From positions 248,001 to 312,000 of IMG/VR virus record IMGVR_UViG_3300032334_002567: a stretch of 64,000 nucleotides of DNA, one strand, 5' to 3'. Each line of letters starts with the position of its first letter. Positions within the stretch are counted from its first letter, which is position 1. Position numbers and translations under genes: made by a program. The notes beneath the pieces are model-generated. The model made no database searches. It had not been told where the DNA came from and saw nothing but the letters and a program-made list of their open reading frames with translations. Below are positions 9,028 to 57,440 of the stretch, piece by piece.

Positions 9028-10110
9028 ATGCGAATATACCTCAATAACATAGGCGGCAAAAGACTCGTTAGAAGAGCTAATGATAAGAATTATTTAAAGG
9101 CAGTAGTCGCATACTTTGATAATTTCACAACACAATGGACAGCTTTAGGTCTTACGGGACTCGGTAGCGTTGTATCGAAAGTCACCAAAGCTCAACCCGG
9201 TTACGGTCAATATAGCGGCAACATTGCTGGTTTGGGTGCAAAAGTCATGGTTAATGGAACCATTCACATTAATGGAACTATGTACTCAGACGATGAAATT
9301 AATATTTACAAAAATGAAACCATAGTATACGCAACTGGCAGCAGTAGCGGTACTGATTTTACATTTAATGATGTTACATTTTCTGTAATTTATGGAGACA
9401 CTATAAGATTTGGCATACAGCCTCTGCCAGGCTTTGGTGGTGATTATTATGGCACTACTGGTGGCAGTAATGCACCTCTTAGTATTTGGATAGTACCATC
9501 GGGTCCAACACCAACTCCAACACCTGCACCAACATCAACACCAACTCCAACTCCTGGCCCAACTAATACTCCAACCAATACACCAATACCCCCAACTGAT
9601 ACACCAACACCTGGCCCAACTGATACACCAACACCTGTGCCTCCAACTCCAACTCCTGGCCCAACAAATACTCCCACATTAACACCAACTGCTACGCCAA
9701 CACCTGGCCCAGCACCATTTAATAATTTTAATTCTACTTGGAACGCTGTTGGATTTACTGGTTCTGGATCGTCAGGAGACCCATATACGAGAACTTATGC
9801 TCAATACTCCGGCGATATTGGAGGAGCACAGTTTACTGTTATATCTACCGGTACTCTACGCATAACCGGCTTAGTGGGAGAAGATTTTGGTGTAAATATA
9901 TATAAGCAAACTAACGGCGTTGGATCCTTTACTTCTATCTCTTCGTCCGGCGATAATTGGAGTGGCGGCGGTGGTTACTACATTCTTGACTTAACTCTCA
10001 GCGTTTCGGCTAATGACGTTATTCAACTAGATGATACCGGTAATGGATTTAGTATCTGGGGCGGCGGCTTAGGTCAGCCTGCTGGAGCACTTAACATTTG
10101 GTGGCAGTAG
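9028..10110 (+). CDS. Pro/Thr-linker protein with two related beta-rich domains (virion appendage-like)
   Basis: central PTPTP repeat; both flanking domains share FN/F..W.A.G.TG.GS and YSG.I.G segments. Confidence 0.6.
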
Positions 10111-22421: not shown

Positions 22422-22534
22422 CCGGATCTGGGTAGGGACTTTGAAAAGTTCTTCTTTCTCAGTTCCGGATCTGGGTAGCGACTTTGAAAAGTTCTTCTTT
22501 CTCAGTTCCGGATCTGGGTAGCGACTTTGAAAAG
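22422..22534. repeat. 43-bp tandem direct repeat (about 2.6 copies)
   Basis: CCGGATCTGGGTAGSGACTTTGAAAAGTTCTTCTTTCTCAGTT at 22422, 22465 and partial at 22508. Confidence 0.9.
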
Positions 22535-24325: not shown

Positions 24326-24353
24326 TTGACATTTTGATTGTACCCTATAGACT
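24326..24353 (+). promoter_or_regulatory. sigma70-type promoter with TTGTACCCTA inside the spacer
   Basis: TTGACA-16 bp-TAGACT upstream of the ruvB-like gene and array 1. Confidence 0.65.
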
Positions 24354-24379: not shown

Positions 24380-25465
24380 ATGATTCCACAGGGTGAGTTG
24401 ATTTTCTGGGGGCCGAAGCATGAGGACAATCTTCCTATGCCTAGTAGGGAGGATAGGTTGAAGCGGGTGGACTCTGGCAATCCTTCTAGTCCGTTTAGCC
24501 GGTTCGTTGGTAATGAGCGGGCTGTTCGGAAGATGCAGGCTGCTGTGTATAGTGCGTTGGGCCGTCCGAATCATATCCAGCGTGATTTGGCGTTTGCCAT
24601 CTTTGGGCCTGCGTCTAGTGGCAAGACTACTTTGGCTCGGCTTTATGCTGATTCTGTAGAGTTGCCGTTGGTGGAGGTTAGTCCCAAGAGTATTCGGACT
24701 ACGGATGATCTTTTGGAGTTCATTCGTGCGACTTTGCTGGAGACAGAGGTTCCGTTGGTGGATTGTGGTACGGATCAGTTTGTGTTGCCTCCGATGGTGG
24801 TGTTTATTGACGAGGTTCATGCACTGAGTCGTTCGGTGGTGGATGGTCTGTTGAAGGCTACGGAATATAAGGATGCCATTCTTGTGACGGACGGTGGTTC
24901 AACCGTTGACTGTCATAACGTGACATGGATGATTGCGACAACGGATGAGGGTCGGTTGTTTGATGCGTTCCGTACTCGTTTTAGCCCGATTATGTTGCAG
25001 TATTTGACTAAGGCCGAAGTGGCGAAGATTGTTAGCATGGCTCATAAGGATTTGCCTTCTGAGGTGTGTATGTTGGTGGCTCACTATAACAGTCGGATTC
25101 CCCGTAAGGCTTTGGAGTTTGCTAGGTACATGAAGATGGTTCGTGATATGCACCCTGAGATGACTTGGGAGGACGTTGCCCGTCAGGTTGCTGGTGATGA
25201 GGGGATTGACGAGTATGGGATGCAGGAGCTTCATTTGAAGGTCTTGCGGGCTTTGGGTCAGGGGCCGGTTGCTCGTAATCGTATAAGTTTGGTTGTGGGC
25301 AGGAAGATTGAGGAAGTGGAGCGGTACATCATGCCGTGGCTGTTGAGTGAGACAGAGGATCAGCCTGCGATGGTTACTGTGTCGAGCAAGGGCTATGTGA
25401 TTACTAGGGCTGGGCTTGACGAATTGGAGAAACGTGGTATAAGCTATGTGGCTGAAGCTGCGTGA
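24380..25465 (+). CDS. ruvB: RuvB-like Holliday junction branch migration AAA+ ATPase
   Basis: F..FVGN, GPASSGKTTLA (Walker A), FIDEVHAL (Walker B), ATT..G.L..AFRTRF, PR.A, GID..G...GP...E.Y..P.L C-terminal winged helix; AGGAGG RBS before ATG 24380. Confidence 0.8.
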   Translation: MIPQGELIFWGPKHEDNLPMPSREDRLKRVDSGNPSSPFSRFVGNERAVRKMQAAVYSALGRPNHIQRDLAFAIFGPASSGKTTLARLYADSVELPLVEVSPKSIRTTDDLLEFIRATLLETEVPLVDCGTDQFVLPPMVVFIDEVHALSRSVVDGLLKATEYKDAILVTDGGSTVDCHNVTWMIATTDEGRLFDAFRTRFSPIMLQYLTKAEVAKIVSMAHKDLPSEVCMLVAHYNSRIPRKALEFARYMKMVRDMHPEMTWEDVARQVAGDEGIDEYGMQELHLKVLRALGQGPVARNRISLVVGRKIEEVERYIMPWLLSETEDQPAMVTVSSKGYVITRAGLDELEKRGISYVAEAA

Positions 25466-26198
25466 ACCAATAAGTTCGATTTTGCACACTGAAGAAGTGA
25501 ACCACTTCCATAGATTTAGCAAGTTCTGTGAGTGAACCACTATAGGGAATTTTACACAAAGCCGTAGTGAACCTTGGATGATGATTTTATATTCGCACTG
25601 AGTGAACCATTAGAAGAGATTTTACATGCCCCACGAGTGAACCATTGAAGCCGATTTTACATGATGAAATAGTGAACCACGGTTTAGGATTTTACATTTT
25701 GACAGAGTGAACCAGCCTCGAAGATTTTACACTGAAGTTGAGTGAACCAGGGACCGGGATTTTACATGGGATCCACAGTGAACCAAGTGGTACGATCTTA
25801 CAGTCAAGAAGAGTGAACCATCAAAAGCAATTTTATAGCGACGTTGAGTGAACCAGACTTTCGGATTTTACATCACGACCGAGTGAACCATATCCGCTGA
25901 TTTAAATAACGGAAAAGAGTGAATCACGCAATACGATTTTTAACACAACGCCCGAGTGAACCAAGAAAACGGATTTCAACATAATCCGATAGTGAACCAT
26001 TGGGCATTTTTTTGCAATGAGAGCGAGTGAACCAAATAGATCGATTTTACATACCGTGCGAGTGAACCAGGGGAGAAGATTTTATAGGTTTGGAGAGTGA
26101 ACCGTGTAGATCGATTTAGCATACAGTTCGAGTGAACCAATTCTTCAGATTTTACATGATGAGTAAGTGAACCATAAATTTGATTTAGCATAAAGGAA
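25460..26198 (+). ncRNA. TIGR-like dual-repeat guide RNA array 1 (about 21 units of 35 nt)
   Basis: alternating (G)AGTGAACCA and GATTTTACA repeats separated by unique 8-nt spacers; edge repeats at 25460, 25495, 25530 ... 26130, 26165. Confidence 0.88.
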
Positions 26199-26209
26199 TT
26201 GTACCCTAT

Positions 26210-26539
26210 ATGGATGCTCGGGTAGCTTTGCATACCATGATGTTGGCACTTGGGCGTGAAGGAGCGACTCCGATGGTCAGGATGGAGTCTGGGTACAGTA
26301 TCAAGAACAACAAGTTCCTAAAAAGATTAAAGAAAAAGTTTAAGAGGCACGGGCCGTGCAGGGTTCCAGAATATGAAGATTATTTTCTTCTAAGTTCGGA
26401 ACCTTATTTTGTTTATAAATATGCGGAGATTATTGGTGCAAACAAAATGCCTGAGCCTTTGCATCGAAAGATGTTAAGTTTTGCTATTATGAATCCGAAT
26501 AATTATTATGTGAAGCGTTATTTAAGTCAAAGGAGTTGA
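26210..26539 (+). CDS. phage helical-repeat family protein
   Basis: C-terminal YA......MPE.LHRKML......NNYYVK.Y shared with paralogs. Confidence 0.6.
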   Translation: MDARVALHTMMLALGREGATPMVRMESGYSIKNNKFLKRLKKKFKRHGPCRVPEYEDYFLLSSEPYFVYKYAEIIGANKMPEPLHRKMLSFAIMNPNNYYVKRYLSQRS

Positions 26540-26543
26540 GAAG

Positions 26544-27377
26544 ATGCCTTACCAGCAAAGATTTTTGGTTTTGGATGGCAGCGAAACTTTTAATTATAAT
26601 AGGGCTTCTTCTGATGTTAAGAGTAAACAACCAGCGGCTAAGTTTTGTCCCATTCTTCTGAGTGTTCCAGATAATATCTTCTCAAATTGTAAAAACATTG
26701 AGGATCGTCTTGAAGATTGGGTGAAGAAGGTTTACGCCCAAAAGAATGAATTGCAGCTTTGGTCTGGACATATGTTGGTTGTAATGACAGAGGAGCAGTG
26801 TAGTTCTAATCATCAGATGAATCTTGTATTTAATAGTTATAATTGGAATAATGTTTTACCTTCTTGGCTGAATGTTCCTACTGATGCTACTACAGCAATT
26901 ACATTTGTTAAGGATGTTGGCGTTAATCTTCCTGAGTTTGAGCCTGTAATTAGTCAAGAATCAAAGACAAGTTACGAGTACGCTATTATCTTGAGGAAGA
27001 GATTTGAGATGGGAGAACCGGCTATTGCTAAGGATGCTGGTTTGAGTTGTCGTTATGCTAAGGAAATTATTGGTGGTAGGTTTTTGCTTGGAGAGCCTAC
27101 TATTGCCCAGCATGAACGTGCTGCTGACTTGTATGCTGAGAAGATCAGGGAGTGGCGTTTGTGGGGAGAGTTCAGTCATGAAACCCTGATGACGAGTCCG
27201 GTTTGGATGTATCATTATGCCAAGGATTTTTGTGGAGGTCGTTTGCCTGAGAATCTCCATAATCGGATGTTGATGATGAGTGTGATGGAACCGAATAATT
27301 ATTGGGTGAAGCGGTATAGTGCCAAGAAGTATCAGAAGAAGAAGCGGGCGCCAAAAGCTAATTTAGAAAATGCTTGA
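26544..27377 (+). CDS. phage helical-repeat family protein
   Basis: YA..I...RF..GEP.IA repeats; GRLPENLHNRML...NYWVK. Confidence 0.75.
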   Translation: MPYQQRFLVLDGSETFNYNRASSDVKSKQPAAKFCPILLSVPDNIFSNCKNIEDRLEDWVKKVYAQKNELQLWSGHMLVVMTEEQCSSNHQMNLVFNSYNWNNVLPSWLNVPTDATTAITFVKDVGVNLPEFEPVISQESKTSYEYAIILRKRFEMGEPAIAKDAGLSCRYAKEIIGGRFLLGEPTIAQHERAADLYAEKIREWRLWGEFSHETLMTSPVWMYHYAKDFCGGRLPENLHNRMLMMSVMEPNNYWVKRYSAKKYQKKKRAPKANLENA

Positions 27378-27401
27378 CAAGTCTATTATCTGTGGTATAA
27401 T
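27374..27401 (+). promoter_or_regulatory. strong sigma70-type promoter of array 2
   Basis: TTGACA-16 bp-TATAAT with extended TGn. Confidence 0.85.
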
Positions 27402-27407
27402 GGTTTT

Positions 27408-27555
27408 AACCAAGGTAGTCGATTTTTTAAGTTCAAATAGTGAACCATATTGCCGGATTTTATATCAGGCTGAAGTGAACCATAGCAAAGGATTTTGCAT
27501 CGGCTGAAGAGTGAACCATCGCCCAGTGATTTCAACAAGATCAACAAGTGAATCA
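27408..27555 (+). ncRNA. TIGR-like array 2 (about 4 units)
   Basis: AACCA-aggtagtc-GATTTTTTA-agttcaaa-TAGTGAACCA-tattgccg-GATTTTATA-tcaggctg-AAGTGAACCA-tagcaaag-GATTTTGCA-tcggctgaa-GAGTGAACCA-tcgcccagt-GATTTCAACA-agatcaac-AAGTGAATCA. Confidence 0.85.
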
Positions 27556-28085
27556 TGAATCTGAAGTTTGGCATTAAACCGAGTGACGACGATTGGACGG
27601 CAGAAAAAGAGCTTTCTTATAAAGCTGCTAAGGCTGCTTTTCAAAAGTTTTTTAATGGTGAAAAATTAAGTCGTGAATTAGAGAAGATTATTGCGTCAGA
27701 CGCTACTTGGAGCTGTCAGTATGCTGCTGCATTAAAGGATAGGTTTATACTGGGCGAACCTATTATTGCTTCTAAAGCGAGAACAGCAGGTTGGTATGCT
27801 CGTCATATTATCCGGGGTCCGTGGCCTGAAGGCGAGTCTGGAATATCCCAAAGTGCATATTTCGTATGTGCATATATTTGTGATGTTTTAAACGGGAGCA
27901 GGGTATCTGATTTAATTCACAGAAATATGTTGGCTTTGCTTATAGAAAACCCATCAGATTATTGGGTGCTTGAATATATGCACTATAGAGAATGGCTTGA
28001 TGGTCACGTTGCAGAGCCTAGTTGGGTTCGTCAGGGAAATTGGAATTATGGCGGGGTTACGCAAGAATATTTAAATTCGAATTAG
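27555..28085 (+). CDS. phage helical-repeat family protein
   Basis: YA..L..RF.LGEP.IA, YA..II.GPWPEGE, IHRNML...DYWV. Confidence 0.75.
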   Translation: MNLKFGIKPSDDDWTAEKELSYKAAKAAFQKFFNGEKLSRELEKIIASDATWSCQYAAALKDRFILGEPIIASKARTAGWYARHIIRGPWPEGESGISQSAYFVCAYICDVLNGSRVSDLIHRNMLALLIENPSDYWVLEYMHYREWLDGHVAEPSWVRQGNWNYGGVTQEYLNSN

Positions 28086-28130
28086 GGCAAATGAATTGTA
28101 CCCTATGAAGTTATCGAAAGGAGATTTCTG

Positions 28131-28850
28131 ATGGACATTCTCACTGATAATTGGGTTCAAGTATTCCCTAATATGCTGCATTATGCTTCTAGGACTGGTG
28201 GGCGGGTTCCTGAATTTGAGCCGCTGTTTATTCAGGATGCTGATGCTGCTTCTAGCTATGCAGCTGGATCTATTCATGGGCGTTGGCCAGAAGCAGAAGA
28301 AATTATAGCTACTAATTCTGGTGCTGCTCTTAATTATGCCCGTAAAGTAATTGCGGGTAAGTGGGAACCCGGAGAGGCTGCTATTGCTACTAATCCTAAA
28401 GATAGCTACTGGTATGCCACTTATGTTCTCAAAGGCAGCTTCCCAGAAGGCGAAGCGGAAATTGCTAAACATCCTGACCTTAGTTTTGATTATGCAAGAA
28501 ATGTGATTTATGGTCGGTTTATTGCTGGTGAAGCTGAGATTGGCAAGTTAGAAGTCACTGGCTTTAATCCCAAGATGGCTTTAGATTATATGAATCTTTG
28601 GGTGAAGGGTAATTGGTCGGGTTGGACTGAAGATCAGATTCGTGTGTGTCCTTGTTGGCTGTATAACTATGCCAAGCAGCATTGTAAGGGTAGGCTTCCA
28701 GATAATCTTCATAATGCTATGCTGACATTTGGCATGACAATTAATGAGAATTATTGGGTGAAGAAGTATTTTAAGGCTGCGAAGTACCAGAAGAAGATTA
28801 AGCGGCGCAATCCACCGGAGATGGCTGCTCCTATTGTTATCCCTGATTAA
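28131..28850 (+). CDS. phage helical-repeat family protein
   Basis: four ~23-aa YA..V..G.W.E.E..IA repeats; GRLPDNLHNAML...NYWVK. Confidence 0.8.
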   Translation: MDILTDNWVQVFPNMLHYASRTGGRVPEFEPLFIQDADAASSYAAGSIHGRWPEAEEIIATNSGAALNYARKVIAGKWEPGEAAIATNPKDSYWYATYVLKGSFPEGEAEIAKHPDLSFDYARNVIYGRFIAGEAEIGKLEVTGFNPKMALDYMNLWVKGNWSGWTEDQIRVCPCWLYNYAKQHCKGRLPDNLHNAMLTFGMTINENYWVKKYFKAAKYQKKIKRRNPPEMAAPIVIPD

Positions 28851-28860
28851 GGAGTATTTT

Positions 28861-29046
28861 ATGAATCTATCCCCTCGGCAGTCTTTAGTTCTTAAGGCAA
28901 TTTTGGTTTATGTGGACAAAGATTTGAGTAATATCAATGATTTCTTCACCCAGTTTGACGGGGCATTTGTAGTTAATGGTGAAGACACTCAGCCCATTGA
29001 AGAATCTGAGATTATTGAGCTTTGGAGTTTAGCGGGTGGAAACTGA
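28861..29046 (+). CDS. hypothetical protein
   Basis: AAGGAG RBS before ATG 28861. Confidence 0.6.
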   Translation: MNLSPRQSLVLKAILVYVDKDLSNINDFFTQFDGAFVVNGEDTQPIEESEIIELWSLAGGN

Positions 29047-29539
29047 AAAAGTTATTTTTGATAATGACGAACATTCTATAACGGTTAAACCCGTTACGTT
29101 AATTTTCAATAATACTTATGGGGAGAGTGTATATCCTGAACGGGTAATGATTGATTCAAATATGACTTTGGATCATTTTAAAACCCTAAAGGAGATTGAT
29201 CCTTATACGGCTGCTTTTTTTAAATTTGTTGTGGATGATTATCCTCATCCTGTGATGAAGAGTTTTCTTGAGAAGTCGGCAATTGGATGTCGTCATTTAA
29301 TTGGATTGTTTTCTTTGAGCTTGGAGCTGCTGAGTCAACAGAAAAAGTTCGGTTGGAAGTATCCAGAGGCTAATCTTCATCCTAGACAACAGTTAAATTT
29401 AGCAGATGCTTTGATTGTTTTTGGGCAACCAGAGCGATTTGTTAAATTGGTGAAATATGTGCAAGCTGGGTTCTTTGACCAGTATCAAATGTGTGCAAAA
29501 GAATCTTGGCGTGATGAAGCGTTCAGGGTGATGTCTTGA
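29036..29539 (+). CDS. hypothetical protein
   Basis: 167-aa ORF, GGAG RBS. Confidence 0.65.
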   Translation: METEKVIFDNDEHSITVKPVTLIFNNTYGESVYPERVMIDSNMTLDHFKTLKEIDPYTAAFFKFVVDDYPHPVMKSFLEKSAIGCRHLIGLFSLSLELLSQQKKFGWKYPEANLHPRQQLNLADALIVFGQPERFVKLVKYVQAGFFDQYQMCAKESWRDEAFRVMS

Positions 29540-29563
29540 CATTAGTGTTTTCTGTGGTATACT
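29536..29563 (+). promoter_or_regulatory. sigma70-type promoter of the putative sRNA
   Basis: TTGACA-16 bp-TATACT with extended TGn. Confidence 0.8.
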
Positions 29564-29569
29564 GATCGG

Positions 29570-29766
29570 GCCGATCAAAACTTACCGTGCTTGTGCTGCT
29601 ATGGCATCCAGCAGAAACGGTGACTCAGCGGAAGGTAGTCGGCTGATCTGCCCGTAAGACTCCGGGCAGTTAGCTAAACGTCCGCAGTTCATAACACATT
29701 CACCCTCCGTCCTTTCTAATGTGTGTATGAATAGGTCTGCCTCCTCAAAAGAGGCAGACTTTTTTT
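29570..29766 (+). ncRNA. putative ~200-nt structured small RNA
   Basis: lies between a promoter and an intrinsic terminator, no convincing ORF; helices ACCGT/ACGGT, CTGCT/AGCAG, GCGGA/TCCGC, CTGCCCG/CGGGCAG, TTCATAACACATT/AATGTGTGTATGAA. Confidence 0.7.
29735..29766 (+). terminator. intrinsic terminator
   Basis: GTCTGCCTC-ctcaaaa-GAGGCAGAC followed by T7. Confidence 0.85.
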
Positions 29767-29809
29767 GTACCCTATAGTTTTGTGTTCTCAACTTTTTAGG
29801 AGCTAAACC

Positions 29810-29965
29810 ATGGCTAAGGATGATAAGCCCCAGTTCGATCCTGATAGTGATGATGAGTATGACTATCTCAAGGAGAATTGGGAACCGGGTGATGAGCCTA
29901 TGAATGATCGTCAGCGTCGTGAAAATGAACAGTTGGATGAAGAGTACCGTCGTAACAAGTTTTAA
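29810..29965 (+). CDS. small acidic protein (51 aa)
   Basis: AGGAG RBS; MAKDDKPQFDPDSDDEYDYLKENWEPGDEPMNDRQRRENEQLDEEYRRNKF; below the ORF-track cutoff. Confidence 0.65.
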   Translation: MAKDDKPQFDPDSDDEYDYLKENWEPGDEPMNDRQRRENEQLDEEYRRNKF

Positions 29966-29986
29966 TTTTACAAAAGGAGTTTAACT

Positions 29987-30898
29987 ATGGGTAAGGCTAA
30001 GAAGGCGACTTTAAGTGAAGATGCAATTGAAGTTTTGAGTGGTCTTGGGGAGATTACTCGACTTGATAAAGATTTGAAAAAGCTAATTCGAACTTTGAAT
30101 CGTGATGAGGTTCGGTGCATTGTGAACTATTATTACAATGTGCAGGAGAACCGGATGAGGTCTTCTAAGCAGATTGATGCTGCCAGTAAGGCTGGTACTC
30201 CGCATGATCTGATGGTTTATCTGAATGCCCAAACTCAAGTTTTGGAAAATCAGATTGCTAAGGCTATGGATGAGTGGACTGAGGGGCATCCTGTAGCTAA
30301 GGCTTTGAAGGACAATGTTTATGGTATTGGCCCGATTATTTCAGCGGGTCTGGTTGCTCATTTTGATATTCGTCGGGCTGCTACTGCTGGTGCATTCTGG
30401 CGATATGCTGGTCTTGACCCCACATCTGAGTGGAACAAGGGTGAGAAGCGGCCTTGGAATGCAGCTTTGAAAACTTTGTGTTGGAAGGTCGGCCAGAGTT
30501 TCATGAAGTTCTCTAATGCTACTGATAAAGATACCGGGGCAGCTAAGTGCTTTTACGGTGATCTTTATCGTCAGAAGAAGGCTGAATTGGTTGCTAAGAA
30601 TCAGGGTGGTGGATTTAAGGGTCTGGCGGATAGTGTGTTGAAGGCTAAGAAGTTTCGTGATGTCGCAACTAAAGCAAAATATGAATCAGGGATGCTTCCT
30701 GATGGTCATATTGATGCTATGGCTCGTCGCTGGGCTGTGAAGCTGTTTCTGAGTAATCTGCATGAACTTTGGTGTGCAGCAGAGGGAATTCCGTGTCCTC
30801 GGCCTTATTCGATGGCGATTCAGGGCCATGCTCATTACATCATGCAGCCTGAACTGGCTGATTTGATTAATGTTTGGAAGAATGAAGCTAGGATTTAA
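29987..30898 (+). CDS. TasA-like Nop-domain RNA-binding protein (IS110/IS116 C-terminal fold, no nuclease domain)
   Basis: coiled-coil then YGIGPIISAGLVAHFDI.R..T.GAFWRYAGLDP...G.K..WN..LK..C, Y..LY...K, H....A.R.AVKLFL..L...W; no DEDD RuvC or HNH; dual-repeat arrays nearby. Confidence 0.82.
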   Translation: MGKAKKATLSEDAIEVLSGLGEITRLDKDLKKLIRTLNRDEVRCIVNYYYNVQENRMRSSKQIDAASKAGTPHDLMVYLNAQTQVLENQIAKAMDEWTEGHPVAKALKDNVYGIGPIISAGLVAHFDIRRAATAGAFWRYAGLDPTSEWNKGEKRPWNAALKTLCWKVGQSFMKFSNATDKDTGAAKCFYGDLYRQKKAELVAKNQGGGFKGLADSVLKAKKFRDVATKAKYESGMLPDGHIDAMARRWAVKLFLSNLHELWCAAEGIPCPRPYSMAIQGHAHYIMQPELADLINVWKNEARI

Positions 30899-31116
30899 TG
30901 AATAAAGAAAACGTCAAGTTGCTCCAATGCTTGATTGATAAAGTTGTTCTTGAGCAGGAATGTATCGAGCAGAGAATTAAGAATGGTACTGTCGAGGAAT
31001 CTGCCACAAATGATGAAGTTGTGGCTTTAGCAAAAGGTTTAATTGCTGATATTACACGGGTCAAAAGAATCATACATATGCTAGAAGATGTCAAAAGTAT
31101 GTGTAGATTAACTTAG
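30898..31116 (+). CDS. hypothetical protein translationally coupled to the TasA-like gene
   Basis: TAATG overlap. Confidence 0.6.
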   Translation: MNKENVKLLQCLIDKVVLEQECIEQRIKNGTVEESATNDEVVALAKGLIADITRVKRIIHMLEDVKSMCRLT

Positions 31117-31118
31117 AT

Positions 31119-31213
31119 TTGACGTAAGTTCTTTTGAATAAAGAACTTACGTCAACAGACTTTTTGCCATTTGACGTAAGTGCAGTCTAACAAACGACTT
31201 ACGTCAAATGGCT
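31119..31213. repeat. two tandem inverted repeats with TTGACGTAAGT/ACTTACGTCAA arms
   Basis: TTGACGTAAGTTCTTT-tgaat-AAAGAACTTACGTCAA and GCCATTTGACGTAAGT...ACTTACGTCAAATGGC. Confidence 0.85.
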
Positions 31214-31397
31214 GAAGTTTTGTGTTCGAGGTGATTTGTCATTGTTTTTTTACACCCAGGGCGATGGTATTTGTCATTGTTTTATGAACCCAATAATTTT
31301 TGGGTCGGTCTAATTTTAAAATAGATTGTGGTATACTTAGGGTCACATAAAAAAATTGTACCCTATGAATTTGTTGTCTACTTAAAAGGGAAAAAAG

Positions 31398-31577
31398 ATG
31401 GGACGTAGAACGCTAATTTTAACTTTGCTGGCTGTTGCTTTGGGAAGCACCGCAGTTTTTGCGGCGAATAAGGTCTATAAATACCGCTGCCCTAAGTGCA
31501 AGTTAATTCAAGAATATGAAATTCCCGGTTCAAAGAAATGTCCGAATGACGGACGAATGATGATTCGTGTAAATTAA
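31398..31577 (+). CDS. small exported Zn-ribbon-like protein (59 aa)
   Basis: signal-peptide-like N-terminus, CPKC and CPND motifs. Confidence 0.6.
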   Translation: MGRRTLILTLLAVALGSTAVFAANKVYKYRCPKCKLIQEYEIPGSKKCPNDGRMMIRVN

Positions 31578-31777: not shown

Positions 31778-31829
31778 TTTTAAAATATCCATAAAAGAAT
31801 TGTACCCTATAGGTGCAAGGAGAACCCAC

Positions 31830-33173
31830 ATGCCAAGAGCGAAAAAGGTTACGAAGAACGAGCAAGAGATTGTTGATGCTGTCAAGCAGACTCTTGCATC
31901 TTTTAGTGTTTCAGAAGCGGAATACGTCGAGTTCAAGAAAGATATTGAGAACATTGGCTACCGCTATAGCTTGGAGTTCCCTTTTTGGGGAGTGCTGTCG
32001 GAGCGGTGTTCTTTTAGTCTGACTAAGCATCTTGTGCCGACTGCCGGTATTACCAAGACGGGCCATATTATTTTTAATGTGGACTTTGTGAAGGAACTGC
32101 GTGAGAAGCACGGCAAGCTGTATCATAAGAAGATGCTGTTTCTGATTGCACATGAGATTGCCCACTTTGCTTTTGAACACGCCGAGCGGCAGGGTCAGCG
32201 TGATGCCAAAATCTTCAATATTGCTGCTGACTATGCAATCAACCTGCTGTTGCACTACCAGTTCAATGGTAATAGCGATTACTTTATCGAAGGTGGTATG
32301 CTTGATACTTCGTATGACGGCATGAGTGCCGAGCAGATTTACGAACTTATCAAGGATAATTATAAAGGTCGTGGCCGAAGTGATGGTGGTGACGGTGGCG
32401 ACGGTATTGGTAACGATCTTCGTCCTGATCTTACGGAAGAAGATATTGCCAATGGTTCTGCTTCGGTTCGTGAGCGTCGGATTCCTCTTCCTGATCTTCG
32501 TGGGAAGAGTCCCGAGCAAGCGAGGAAGGAACTTGCAGACTGGATTGGTCGTGGAACGCAAGAGGCTTTTGCTGTTGCAAAGTCACAGGGCAAGTTGCCA
32601 TCTGATCTTGAGCGGGCTATTGCCAAGTTGCTCAAGCCACAGATTGACTGGCTGCGGGCTTTGAAGCAGAAGTTGCGTTTCGGTGTTAGCAGGACAGAGA
32701 AGCGGGACGTTACTTGGTCTGTACCTAACCGTCGTTTTCTTGGTGCTGATTTTATTATGCCAAGCAACGTCGGCCCGGATAAGCCCAAGATTGTTTATGC
32801 TATTGACACTAGCGGTAGCATGAGCGAAAGTGATTTGTCACAGGCTGTTAGTGAGTTGGAAGAAATCCGTGTCAAGTACGGTGCTAAGGTTTATATGCTT
32901 GATTGTGACGCTGATGTTCAATCAAGCCGTTGGATCGAACCGCATGAGCCGCTTCCTAAGTTGAAGGGTGGTGGTGGAACTGATTTTGTTCCAGTGTTCA
33001 ACCATCTGATTGAGAAGCGTATCAGGCCGGATTACTGCTGCTTCTTTACTGACGGTTATGGGAACTTCGGTGACGAAAAGCCACCGTTTGAAGTTCTCTG
33101 GGTCATGACGAGTCAGGTTGACCCGCCGTTTGGAGAAGTAGTCAGGGTGAATGTCCCGTATGAGGGGCAATAA
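31830..33173 (+). CDS. DUF2201-type metallopeptidase plus vWA domain protein
   Basis: HEIAH, NIAADYAIN, DTSGSM (MIDAS), GGGGTDF, FTDGYG. Confidence 0.88.
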   Translation: MPRAKKVTKNEQEIVDAVKQTLASFSVSEAEYVEFKKDIENIGYRYSLEFPFWGVLSERCSFSLTKHLVPTAGITKTGHIIFNVDFVKELREKHGKLYHKKMLFLIAHEIAHFAFEHAERQGQRDAKIFNIAADYAINLLLHYQFNGNSDYFIEGGMLDTSYDGMSAEQIYELIKDNYKGRGRSDGGDGGDGIGNDLRPDLTEEDIANGSASVRERRIPLPDLRGKSPEQARKELADWIGRGTQEAFAVAKSQGKLPSDLERAIAKLLKPQIDWLRALKQKLRFGVSRTEKRDVTWSVPNRRFLGADFIMPSNVGPDKPKIVYAIDTSGSMSESDLSQAVSELEEIRVKYGAKVYMLDCDADVQSSRWIEPHEPLPKLKGGGGTDFVPVFNHLIEKRIRPDYCCFFTDGYGNFGDEKPPFEVLWVMTSQVDPPFGEVVRVNVPYEGQ

Positions 33174-33652: not shown

Positions 33653-34732
33653 ATGGCTGAAAAGCTCTTGAGCAGTGCTAATGTCATCACCGGCAGTCTG
33701 GTGAATGAGATTCGTAAGTGCCGGTCTGTTAAGACGAGCAAGGGGAATGGTATCCCCATGTTTATTTATGGTTCGCCTGGTGTGGGCAAGTCAGAGCAGG
33801 TTCATCAGGCTTGTGAGGCCGATGAAACCATGATCGACCTGCGGCTGAATACTCTTGATTCTATTGACCTTCGTGGTCTGCCTGTGGTGAAGAAGGACGA
33901 TAAGGGCAACCCGACTCAGGTGGAGTGGGTTCGTCCTGAGTTTATCCCGTGGAATGGCAAGGGCATTTTGTTCCTTGACGAGATGAACACGGCTGCACCG
34001 TCTGTGCAGAATCCTGCCCTTCAACTGGTGCTTGACCGTAAGGTTGGTTCGCATCATCTTGGGCCGGATTGGTACATCGTTGCGGCTGGCAACAAGGCTG
34101 ATGATCGGGCGCATACCCATCCTCTGTCTGCTGCTCTGCGTCAGCGGTTTGCCATCTATCACTATGAGCCGGATAAGGATACTTGGAGCAACTGGGCGGT
34201 CAAGAACAACATTCACCCGAACGTCATCGGGTTTATTAGTTTCAAGCCCGACCTGTTGATCCAGCCGCCTCTGGATGATGAGGGTGCTAACCCGAGTCCC
34301 CGTAGCTGGTATTACGTTTCGCAGCGGCTTTATGCCGACCAGTGCGAAACCAGTGATATTCGTGCGATGGTGGGTAGTGCTGCTAACGAGTTCATGGCTT
34401 ATCAGGCTGTCTGTGCCAAGATTCCGAACATTTCGGAAATTATCAATGGTAAGACTACGTTCAAGGAAGATAACAAGAACGTAACCATGAGCTATGCTGT
34501 CAGCACGGCGTTGTCGATTCATCTGCTTCGGTCAAAGTATACGACCGAGCATGTGAATAACTGCTTCAAGGGTGCTATCAACAACATGGCCGGTGAGCCG
34601 AGCATGGTGTTTATGCGGCAGTGCTTGATTCAGGGTGATGAGAAGATGAAGGCCGTCATCATCTCTTGCGACGAAGGCAAGAAGTGGTTCGACAAGCACG
34701 GCGAACATCTCCAGAAGGCTGTCAACTTCTAA
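33653..34732 (+). CDS. MoxR-like AAA+ ATPase
   Basis: GSPGVGKS, DLRGLP, LFLDEMN, AAGN, L.AALRQRF, PSPRSW. Confidence 0.9.
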   Translation: MAEKLLSSANVITGSLVNEIRKCRSVKTSKGNGIPMFIYGSPGVGKSEQVHQACEADETMIDLRLNTLDSIDLRGLPVVKKDDKGNPTQVEWVRPEFIPWNGKGILFLDEMNTAAPSVQNPALQLVLDRKVGSHHLGPDWYIVAAGNKADDRAHTHPLSAALRQRFAIYHYEPDKDTWSNWAVKNNIHPNVIGFISFKPDLLIQPPLDDEGANPSPRSWYYVSQRLYADQCETSDIRAMVGSAANEFMAYQAVCAKIPNISEIINGKTTFKEDNKNVTMSYAVSTALSIHLLRSKYTTEHVNNCFKGAINNMAGEPSMVFMRQCLIQGDEKMKAVIISCDEGKKWFDKHGEHLQKAVNF

Positions 34733-45638: not shown

Positions 45639-45907
45639 GGAAGCGTAGCTCAGTTGGTAGAGCATCGGACTTCAAATAGGAGTGCTTATCGGGAAACTGA
45701 TAAAGTAGAACTGCTCAAATTCGGTGAACGCTTAACTGCCAATACCGAGCCAAGCCTAGAAATAGGAAGGTGTAGAGACTTGACGGGCAGCACCTAAAGT
45801 TGAAAAACAATGGTGAAGGTAAAGTCCAGACCACAAACAGAAATGGTAACGAAAGTTATAGTGGTAAGTTAATCCGTTGGTCCTGGGTTCGAGTCCCAGC
45901 GCTTCCA
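45639..45907 (+). tRNA. tRNA-Lys(UUU) interrupted by a group I intron (exons 45639-45672 and 45869-45907)
   Basis: GGAAGCG/CGCTTCC acceptor; spliced loop CT-TTT-AA; T arm CTGGG-TTCGAGT-CCCAG. Confidence 0.85.
45673..45868 (+). ncRNA. self-splicing group I intron (IC3-like), 196 nt, no ORF
   Basis: P1 ACTTC/GGAGT with U.G at the 5' splice site; CAAATTCGGTGAA, ATACCGAGCCAAG, GTGTAGAGACTTGACGG and AAGGTAAAGTCC core elements; terminal G. Confidence 0.85.
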
Positions 45908-46123: not shown

Positions 46124-46208
46124 GCCGAAGTGGCGAAATTGGCGAAACGCAAGGGACTTAAAATCCCTCACATTAGAAACACTGCGGGTTCGAATCCCGC
46201 CTTCGGCA
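46124..46208 (+). tRNA. tRNA-Leu(UAA)
   Basis: GCCGAAG/CTTCGGC acceptor, AGGGA-CTTAAAA-TCCCT, long variable arm. Confidence 0.92.
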
Positions 46209-46246
46209 CTGGTTTGATTTTTATAACTTGTGAATAAGGAGATAAC

Positions 46247-56669: not shown

Positions 56670-57440
56670 ATGGCTAAAACACCTACAAAGAATTATACGA
56701 ATCTTGATGTTCGAGTGAAAGTCTATAATAAGTGCAAAAAAGCTGAGAGACTTATTCTTCATGGTATCCCTTGGCCCCGTTATGCCGCTGATCGGGCTTA
56801 TCAATATGCTCGTTTTGTATTAAAGCATCGGTGGACAGCGGGCGAGAGGGTTATTCTCAAGTGCCCCCGGTCTGCCTATCTTTATGCTCGTCACGTTATT
56901 GGTGGTCGCTGGGAGAAGGCAGAGAAAATTATTGCTACTTCTTCTTATGCTTCTTATCAATATGCAAAGTATGTGTTGAAGGGTCGATTTCTTCGTGCAG
57001 AAAAGTATGCAAAGCAAACAAGAGCTGGCTGGATTGAATATGATGCCTCTAGGTATGCTTTCTATTATGCTAGAGACATTATCAAGGGACGTTGGAAAGA
57101 GGGTGAGAAACATATAGCCGCAGGTGGCGAAGTTGCTTGTCTTTATGCTAAGAACTTTCTGAAAGCACGGTTCAAAATTGCTGAGGACTGCATTATTCAT
57201 AGTGCCGAAAGTGCTGCTGAATATGCTATCTTCGTTTTAGGTAAGCGATGGAAGAATGCAGAAGATAGAATTCTTCGCAATGAGAGAGCTTTGACTAAGT
57301 ATATGGATTTCTTGAAAGGCGAAGATAAGATTGAGATGCACAACAAGATTCTGGCGGAGGTTATAAAGTATCCGAGTAGTTATAGTGCTGCTAAGCAATG
57401 GGTACAGAGTCATCCTGATTTTTCTAGGGACGCTTGTTGA
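56670..57440 (+). CDS. phage helical-repeat family protein
   Basis: six or more AY.YA..V...RW..AE..I repeats; MHNKIL. Confidence 0.8.
   Translation: MAKTPTKNYTNLDVRVKVYNKCKKAERLILHGIPWPRYAADRAYQYARFVLKHRWTAGERVILKCPRSAYLYARHVIGGRWEKAEKIIATSSYASYQYAKYVLKGRFLRAEKYAKQTRAGWIEYDASRYAFYYARDIIKGRWKEGEKHIAAGGEVACLYAKNFLKARFKIAEDCIIHSAESAAEYAIFVLGKRWKNAEDRILRNERALTKYMDFLKGEDKIEMHNKILAEVIKYPSSYSAAKQWVQSHPDFSRDAC

Follow-up and report, generated by a model that had tools for sequence, protein, structure and literature searches.

A probable phage-borne dual-repeat TIGR-TasA system with guide arrays at three genomic sites

The tasA gene lies on a 64,000-nucleotide stretch of viral DNA (hereafter the window) and encodes a member of the TIGR-Tas family (TIGR, tandem interspaced guide RNA). 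Together with its guide arrays, tasA forms what we consider with high confidence to be a complete phage-borne dual-repeat TIGR-TasA system that most likely binds DNA without cutting it. The window covers positions 248001-312000 of an IMG/VR virus contig (IMGVR_UViG_3300032334_002567; 381,443 bp, 36.5% G+C), whose completeness was estimated at 79%. TIGR-Tas systems were described in 2025, and their natural targets and the origin of their spacers were listed as open questions (PMC12045711). NCBI has a curated model for this kind of system, known since that year, and the locus reported here is a further member. As far as sequence can tell, the features tested of a dual-repeat TIGR-TasA system are present at the locus, with a loop repeat that departs from the canonical boxes, and all three IS110 features that were tested are missing. 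The original prediction had read the same gene as an RNA-guided binding module and not as a mobile IS110 element, a reading that was upheld by the profile scores given below.

Results

TasA is a solo Nop protein without a nuclease domain

The open reading frame (ORF), its own ribosome-binding site and the GIGP...YAGLDP motif were all present as first described. An AAGGAG ribosome-binding site precedes the ATG by 7-8 nt. TasA matched the NCBIfam model NF052498.1 (TIGR_Tas_endo, 'TIGR-Tas system RNA-guided endonuclease') along almost the entire profile (positions 2-214 of 215), scoring 176.6 bits where the cut-off is 100, and the same model was matched by 47 of 47 sampled TasA homologues. By contrast, the NCBIfam IS110 model NF033542 gave 25.6 bits, far under its cut-off of 140; the 47 homologues showed the same pattern. 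Pfam returned only a sub-threshold match to Transposase_20 (19.9 bits, cut-off 21.3). No nuclease domain was found in TasA by Pfam, and DEDD_Tnp_IS110 (PF01548) was absent from the protein, as expected from the earlier claim that an N-terminal DEDD RuvC domain is missing. A six-frame search of the whole 381-kb record, reading through stop codons, also gave nothing for PF01548 at E ≤ 1; there is therefore no hidden or frameshifted RuvC part. Residues 113-145 read GIGPIISAGLVAHFDIRRAATAGAFWRYAGLDP and are followed by TSEWNKGEK. By inspection, and not by structural superposition, the segment after YAGLxP (YAGLDPTSEWNKGEKRPWN) lacks the SSG/QSG-type catalytic serine motif, in agreement with the original prediction. 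These results indicate that the protein is a TasA by the published definition, a nuclease-free solo Nop protein (PMC12045711).

We considered whether the gene is instead a decayed or truncated IS110 transposase, a pseudogene remnant without function. The weak Transposase_20 and IS110 matches would fit such a remnant, as would its annotation: PHROG 4285 is labelled 'transposase', and homologues are named 'Transposase IS116/IS110/IS902 family' or 'transposase' by JGI and NCBI. However, both IS110 scores stay under their cut-offs while the Tas score is well above its own, and no DEDD remnant was found in any frame of the record. The ORF is intact, and more than 3000 database proteins of similar length match it at E ≤ 1e-3, which places it well beyond chance; 34 positions are invariant across the 47 sampled homologues. 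Cognate TIGR arrays are also present here and in relatives. A decayed transposase is therefore extremely improbable. The 'transposase' label used by PHROGs and several source databases is wrong for tasA, and the mislabelling by annotation pipelines that had been foreseen was indeed observed. Neither of the two outcomes named as refuting the original prediction was seen: TasA did not group with IS110 by profile score, and no frameshifted RuvC domain was found in the record. The further term 'domesticated', which implies descent from IS110, found no support. The published proposal runs the opposite way: it treats solo-Nop TasA as the ancestral form, with IS110 arising afterwards by fusion (PMC12045711).

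A phmmer search of the PDB with TasA returned TasR and TasH chains only, and a tblastn search of a phage collection led to the TasH gene of Salicola phage CGphi29. No Tas gene other than tasA was found in the 381-kb record. Even among the closest genomic homologues, which are scattered over many phyla, identity does not exceed 48%; the metagenome runs that hold the phage come from lakes or fresh water. Longer homologues (365-408 aa) carry insertions within the Nop domain, one of them zinc-ribbon-like, and no added nucleases. Insertions of 57 aa and of 41-48 aa (Cys-rich) were seen in the Nop domain of other homologues. In L006, L007 and L008, the three related large phage records of 188-323 kb, the TasA orthologues have an additional CPTCG zinc-ribbon-like segment at the N-terminus, which is missing from the TasA of the window.

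TasA resembles TasR and TasH in its predicted fold and probably retains an RNA-cutting dyad

The structure of TasA was predicted with AlphaFold2 from 47 homologues (pLDDT 89.7, pTM 0.86). In the model, only about 38 residues stand ahead of a coiled coil of two long helices (residues 39-69 and 74-100), which is followed by a helical domain. In a Foldseek search with this model, the top 11 matches were TasR or TasH chains (E 2e-7 to 7.5e-4); the best PDB match was TIGR-TasR 9mty (E 2e-7), accompanied by seven TasH chains. IS621 and ISCro4 ranked after the Tas chains, with E of about 3e-3 or weaker.

A homodimer of TasA was also modelled and reached an interface score (ipSAE) of 0.54, compared with 0.00 for the best control, and the interface comprises residues 33-93 within the coiled coil. 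A score of 0.54 was reached by 21 of 30 solved homodimers and by none of 23 monomers. Since solved Tas dimers exist, the prediction shows likeness rather than proof. These results suggest that TasA is predicted to dimerise via its coiled coil.

SpTasH cuts its own precursor RNA with Y289 and H296, which lie on a flexible C-terminal loop (PMC13421893). This Tyr/His dyad is reported to be a conserved feature of dual-repeat systems that stem-loop systems lack (PMC13421893; bioRxiv 10.64898/2026.09.09.750476). In a BLASTP alignment, Y274 and H281 of TasA align to Y289 and H296 of SpTasH with no gap between them and with the same 7-residue spacing. H281 is invariant in the 47 homologues, and Tyr is the majority residue at the other position of the dyad. 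The loop 274-282 is the sole internal part of the AlphaFold2 model with low pLDDT, which is consistent with the flexible catalytic loop described for SpTasH. TasA thus probably retains the RNA-cutting dyad Y274/H281. The original prediction had described a protein without either catalytic part; this holds for the DEDD domain and the serine motif, but the Tyr/His pair for processing of the guide precursor appears to be kept.

Guide arrays of the dual-repeat type accompany tasA

The decisive partner of TasA, the TIGR guide arrays at 25461-26200 and 27439-27555, lies outside the interval considered in the original prediction. Column statistics show that each unit of the main array consists of the 9-nt edge repeat (g)AGTGAACCA, an 8-nt spacer A, the 9-nt loop repeat GATTTTACA, an 8-nt spacer B and a semi-conserved G, and Tandem Repeats Finder gave a period of 35 for the array. 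This fits the pattern expected of a TIGR array, in which two different repeats of 8-12 nt alternate with two spacers of about 8-12 nt at a period of about 36 nt. Alternating repeats with two spacers are the dual-repeat TIGR architecture as defined before (PMC12045711), and two 8-nt spacers give a guide total of 16 nt, the same as in the SpTIGR of Salicola phage (PMC12045711). With the mini-array and a solitary unit elsewhere in the genome (Table 1), the total is 25 guides (21 + 3 + 1) over three sites. A terminator hairpin stands on one side of the solitary unit, and on its other side the unit abuts the next ORF's start codon. On the + strand of the genome there are 25 copies of GTGAACCA, 23 of them inside TIGR arrays. 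A further candidate unit at genome position 212330 was rejected as spurious. Rfam gave nothing above threshold in 25000-31500.

Both arrays near tasA are embedded in untranslated regions (UTRs). The stop codon of the ruvB-like gene (25463-25465) falls inside the first edge repeat, so the main array sits in the 3' UTR of that gene. The final letter of the mini-array's last edge repeat (AGTGAATCA) is the A of the start codon ATG of ORF 27555-28085, and the mini-array is thus the 5' UTR of this gene.

We also examined related loci, of which 16 were fetched from IMG/VR and further ones were taken from metagenome assemblies. Tandem GTGAACC-type repeats occur near tasA at most of them, usually just downstream. 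A consensus unit was built for 9 loci; its edge is of the AG(T/A)GAACC(A/G) type and equals AGTGAACCA or a close variant such as AGAGAACCA. Matching edge repeats were found at L003, L006, L007, L008, L012-L015 and L019. The array of L007 has 46 units and starts 3 nt after tasA. Loop repeats differ by clade among the relatives (GATTTTAACA, GAACGAGTCA).

Promoter-like elements and the tasA operon

Of 84 copies of the motif (A/T)TTGTACCC(TAT) in the genome, 79 are on the + strand, and the motif is clustered in 50 kb at genome 272-322 kb. When 28 GTACCCTAT sites were viewed in context, they were mostly intergenic and stood about 25-45 nt before a ribosome-binding site. Copies of the TTGTACCC motif in the window include those at 24338, 26199 (after the main array), 28096, 29765, 31356, 31800 and 33597, and there are many more. 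The motif probably serves one temporal class of the phage's genes as their promoter. The ruvB-like gene and the main array have one copy upstream of them, and a sigma70-type promoter that agrees with the consensus at 12 of 12 positions stands ahead of the mini-array (Table 1). Guides may thus be supplied from two promoter classes, phage-type and host-type.

The 51-aa ORF, tasA and the 72-aa ORF stand between a promoter-like motif and a terminator hairpin and form a plausible operon. The grouping of the three genes had been part of the original prediction and stands at this level; the two small ORFs are not conserved partners of tasA. No tblastn homologue of either was found in the ±6-kb relative loci L003 and L004 or in three related phage records, and a near-identical strain in run X6 lacks precisely the 72-aa ORF (joint 30896->31119).

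Two neighbouring elements were noted in this region. The first is a hairpin pair at 31119-31208 (+) with a common 11-12-bp stem (TTGACGTAAGT ... ACTTACGTCAA) and loops of 5 and 15 nt; the first hairpin is followed by a T-run and is terminator-like, and the shared 11-mer occurs nowhere else in the genome. These hairpins were rejected as stem-loop TIGR guide RNA (tigRNA) units because their loops are too short for two spacers. The second, at 29536-29770 (+) directly upstream of the tasA operon, starts with a sigma70-type promoter (TTGACA-16-TATACT with TG, 29536-29563), continues as a structured RNA of about 195 nt (minimum free energy -72.3 kcal/mol, z = -4.79 against shuffles) and closes with a strong terminator (29733-29761 and a T-run). 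Rfam returned nothing for it, blastn found no counterpart in three related phages, and the region is variable or replaced in the strain of run X6. It is a candidate phage small RNA, with no sign of belonging to the TIGR system.

Proposed mechanism

From these elements and from experiments on related proteins, the following course of events can be proposed. The arrays would be transcribed within ordinary mRNAs, the main array as part of the ruvB-like 3' UTR from the phage-specific promoter motif and the mini-array as part of the next gene's 5' UTR from the host-type sigma70 promoter. By homology to SpTasH, a TasA dimer joined by its coiled coil would recognise the precursor, its Nop domains reading the edge and loop repeats, and Y274/H281 would cut inside the edge repeats to give tigRNAs of about 35 nt with two 8-nt spacers each. 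Experiments with FpTasA, MbTasA, PlTasA, TasR and TasH suggest that the resulting ribonucleoprotein (RNP) would bind a 16-bp DNA site in which one strand is paired by spacer A and the adjoining part of the other strand by spacer B. The RNP would then occupy the site and block transcription or replication without a cut. Because TasA has no HNH or RuvC domain, its binding should block rather than cut DNA. Characterised TasA proteins bind DNA without cleavage, and RNA-guided repression and binding in electrophoretic mobility shift assays were shown for the nuclease-free MbTasA (bioRxiv 10.64898/2026.09.09.750476). TasA therefore most likely acts, by analogy with these proteins, as a repressor or blocker that binds DNA without cutting it.

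Observations at odds with a complete DNA-binding system

Several observations weigh against this interpretation. The arrays lie 3.8 kb (main) and 2.4 kb (mini) upstream of tasA on the same strand, with five ORFs between, while the arrays of most relatives are adjacent to the gene. As the same edge repeat stands beside tasA in relatives, the association of repeat and protein is conserved, and what stands out here is the distance alone. Canonically, both repeats start with box D (UG) and end with box C (CCA). The edge repeat agUGAACCA has both boxes; the loop repeat gaUUUUACA has UU and ACA in their place. Relatives have NCA endings (ACA, UCA and CCG), and the G>U and C>A changes in the loop repeat would keep a base pair intact. 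At the end of the main array, the last unit lacks a closing edge repeat. Targets were also missing. We searched with the geometry spacer A + 0-2 nt + reverse complement of spacer B, derived from the 8-nt 3' overhangs made by TasR (PMC12045711), and with the opposite geometry. The 25 guides gave no exact match and a single one-mismatch match in the phage's own 381-kb record. For the 106 guides of four phage records, this phage and its three relatives (G001-G003), no exact match was found in any of the four genomes in either geometry.

A separate nuclease or effector recruited in trans, by which the target DNA would be cut or modified, would also contradict binding without cutting. The NCBIfam name 'RNA-guided endonuclease' and the small unconserved ORFs that flank tasA would fit such a partner, and TasA-ParB operons at other loci show that partner proteins occur (PMC12045711). 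However, tasA has no nuclease or ParB-like gene linked to it at this locus, none is conserved next to it in the relatives examined, and the TasA proteins characterised so far bind without cleaving (bioRxiv 10.64898/2026.09.09.750476). We consider recruitment of this kind quite improbable, and binding without cutting remains the preferred interpretation.

The guides do not match the phage genomes

The three related records used in the target search were fetched whole (251, 188 and 323 kb); their TasA proteins are 63-64% identical to that of the window. In the search of 106 guides across genomes, one-mismatch counts equalled those of the wrong-geometry control. Two-mismatch matches of the 25 guides to their own record numbered 32, compared with 21 ± 4.5 in composition-matched controls, a difference that was not significant. 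The spacers have a G+C content of 47%, compared with 35-36.5% for the phages, which fits foreign targets or selection for stable 8-bp pairing. Overlaps of at least 9 nt between guides, from which longer targets could be built, were not found (null mean 0.16), and a single reverse-complement link between spacers was at chance level. IMG/VR scans with four guide targets gave 4, more than 120 and 57 matches and were uninformative, reflecting chance level and database redundancy. An excess of gap-0 matches in the scan with more than 120 matches was traced to one over-represented prophage family from isolate genomes, with no plausible target. TasA targets are probably found in the host or in unrelated mobile elements.

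These results bear on the possibility that the TasA RNP regulates the phage's own genes or, in a variant, that processing of the arrays serves mainly to set how stable the ruvB-like and repeat-protein mRNAs are or how they are translated. The arrays are inside mRNAs and overlap the ruvB-like stop codon and the ATG of ORF 27555, the remote unit abuts a start codon, and a characterised TasA protein represses transcription in reporter assays (bioRxiv 10.64898/2026.09.09.750476). However, the record, estimated to be only 79% complete, holds no exact self-target, and the two-mismatch count did not differ significantly from its controls. The guides of the three relatives are equally without a match in their own genomes, and the spacers are richer in G+C than the phage (47% against 36.5%). 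Regulation of the phage's own genes is therefore unlikely, and we favour a TasA that binds DNA outside the phage genome.

Some guide pairs are shared across phage lineages

We compared the guides of three lineages, represented by this phage, by G002 and by G001/G003. Across lineages, five guide pairs differ at no more than 2 of their 16 nt, with a chance expectation of 9e-4. The G002 sites involved are C1:115587 and C1:116949. One pair has the same order in both: unit M13 (25882) corresponds to the last unit of G002. In the other four, spacers A and B are exchanged, as in S1 (27439) against G001_215708/G003_112338 and in G002_115587 against G001_215780/G003_112266. The pairs define three cross-lineage targets, TATCCGCT/TTTTCCGT, TAYTGCCG/CAGYCTGA and ACCTGMTT/YTCGTCCT. 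When the same test was applied to the spacers flanking the edge repeat, no shared pairs were found. Shared pairs across the loop and none across the edge give independent support for GATTTTACA as the repeat within the guide, the loop repeat.

Swapped tigRNAs are functional (PMC12045711). Guides with exchanged spacers recognise the same duplex site, so the same or orthologous sites are apparently targeted in different phages, with guides that could not have arisen from each other by simple inheritance or inversion. S1 and its counterpart differ at two positions 9 nt apart, both of which are synonymous in one frame (TAY TGC CGC AGY CTG); this is suggestive, and no more, of a coding sequence as the S1 target. 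We tentatively propose, as one possibility and not the likeliest, that shared and swapped pairs reflect natural targets that have been conserved and probably belong to the host or to a common competitor element, with guides created from a target in either orientation.

The array also varies between strains. The contig L005 of IMG/VR is 100% identical over 12.9 kb. In contigs from other lake metagenomes, the locus is 90-99% identical, and the content of the array differs. The two units at 25811-25880 are missing in runs X3 and X4, and in run X3 a 328-nt stretch is replaced by 82 other letters. The array changes fall within 25483-26240, and loose contig ends carry units with new spacers.

Other features of the window

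The coordinates of the features are collected in Table 1. Interspersed among the TIGR arrays are paralogues of a helical-repeat protein with recurring GEPxIA and YA..I..GR motifs. They matched no family in Pfam or PHROG, and their closest clusters in the Atlas consist of viral proteins without a known function. In three of three related phages, a homologue is located upstream of tasA at a distance of about 1-1.6 kb, with more copies elsewhere in those genomes. The window also has six tRNA genes (Thr, Glu, Gln, Arg and two Leu). The DUF2201/VWA protein bears the PHROG label 'HNH endonuclease', which Pfam domains do not support.

Table 1. Features of the TIGR-TasA locus and of the rest of the window (window positions unless stated otherwise)
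Feature	Position	Strand	Description
Phage-specific promoter-like motif TTGTACCCTAT	24338..24348	+	Upstream of ruvB-like gene and main array; probable transcript start
RuvB-like AAA+ gene	24380..25465	+	Pfam RuvB_N 1.5e-10; sub-threshold RuvB_C 17.7 bits, cut-off 24.7
Main dual-repeat TIGR array	25461..26200	+	21 head-to-tail units, 35-nt period, four of 36-37 nt
Sigma70-type promoter TTGACA-16-TATAAT (TTGACA-16-TGTGGTATAAT)	27374..27401	+	Extended -10 TG; 12/12 consensus; ahead of mini-array
TIGR mini-array	27439..27555	+	3 units; own sigma70-type promoter
Solitary TIGR unit, edge-AAAGCAAA-GATTTAACA-TCACCACC-edge	Genome C1:171243-171287		Outside window; about 100 kb from tasA
Phage promoter-like motif TTGTACCCTATAG	29765..29777	+	Right after terminator, 33 nt before 51-aa ORF; probable tasA operon promoter
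51-aa acidic ORF	29810..29965	+	pI 4.2; first operon gene; ends 21 nt before tasA
tasA	29987..30898	+	303 aa; coiled coil about residues 39-100, Nop-type RNA-binding domain about 101-303, Y274/H281 loop
72-aa ORF	30898..31116	+	Overlaps tasA stop codon (TAATG); variable between strains
Terminator-like hairpin	31119..31155	+	16-bp stem, then T-run; operon end
Helical-repeat paralogues	26544-27377, 27555-28085, 28131-28850, ~26390-26533, ~56787-57356		
DUF2201 metallopeptidase-like plus VWA protein	31800-33173	+	Paired with MoxR/AAA_5 ATPase gene
MoxR/AAA_5 ATPase	33653-34732	+	Partner of DUF2201/VWA gene
Group I intron	45662-45849	+	Rfam RF00028, 52 bits, cut-off 50
tRNA-Leu (taa)	46124-46209		Follows group I intron
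Tandem repeats	1656-2625, 9505-9711, 22422-22534		ACACCAAC-type, periods 39 and 87, probably Thr/Pro-rich coding repeats; also a 43-nt repeat, 2.6 copies, 98% identity

Discussion

A usable comparative set is formed by the 25 guides at the three sites of this phage, the 17 to 45 guides of each relative and the strain variants in several lake metagenomes. Two results bear on the open questions of targets and spacer origin, namely G+C-rich spacers that match none of four phages and guide pairs kept across lineages. If the shared pairs do mark natural targets, this phage family would offer a direct route to the natural targets of TIGR-Tas and to the origin of its spacers, and UTR-embedded arrays under host-type and phage-type promoters would in addition control when guides are supplied. 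What deserves the attention of specialists is the splitting of the arrays and their place in UTRs, together with the guide pairs shared across lineages.

Among known systems, FpTasA of Flavonifractor plautii (Faure et al. 2025, PMC12045711) is likewise a solo Nop protein without a nuclease and has an array of alternating edge and loop repeats; it bound processed RNAs of 36 nt (PMC12045711). Compared by description, the units here are 35 nt long with 8 + 8-nt spacers, whereas FpTIGR has 9 + 9. The arrays here are also split over three sites, embedded in UTRs and placed 2.4-3.8 kb and about 100 kb from tasA, and the element that carries them is a phage of 381 kb or more. SpTasH, from Salicola phage CGphi29 (PDB 9w03 and related; PMC13421893), shares with the present system a phage genome, the dual-repeat type and a guide total of 16 nt. 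Its Nop domain is 27% identical to that of TasA over 190 aa, and it is among the best structural matches. However, SpTasH has an N-terminal HNH nuclease and cuts DNA, whereas TasA has no HNH motif. MbTasA and PlTasA (bioRxiv 10.64898/2026.09.09.750476, 10.64898/2026.08.11.744272) are nuclease-free Tas proteins as well and act as RNA-guided DNA-binding dimers, and the repression of transcription by MbTasA is reversible. They belong to the stem-loop TIGR type, whereas the TasA of the window is of the dual-repeat type with the loop kept.

IS110 and IS1111 elements, such as IS621 (PDB 8wt6), share the Nop-like RNA-binding and coiled-coil core (Foldseek TM about 0.45) and the GIGP...YAGLDP motif. 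Unlike them, TasA has no DEDD/RuvC domain and no serine Tnp motif, its locus has neither a bridge RNA nor element ends, and its guides are arrayed and not single. The Nop5/Nop56/58 proteins of box C/D snoRNPs (small nucleolar RNPs) share the Nop domain and use box C/D-like guide RNAs with two guide segments (PMC12045711). Compared by description, the system reported here differs from them in a target of DNA and not RNA, in having no fibrillarin or L7Ae partner, and in its compact repeats without K-turns.

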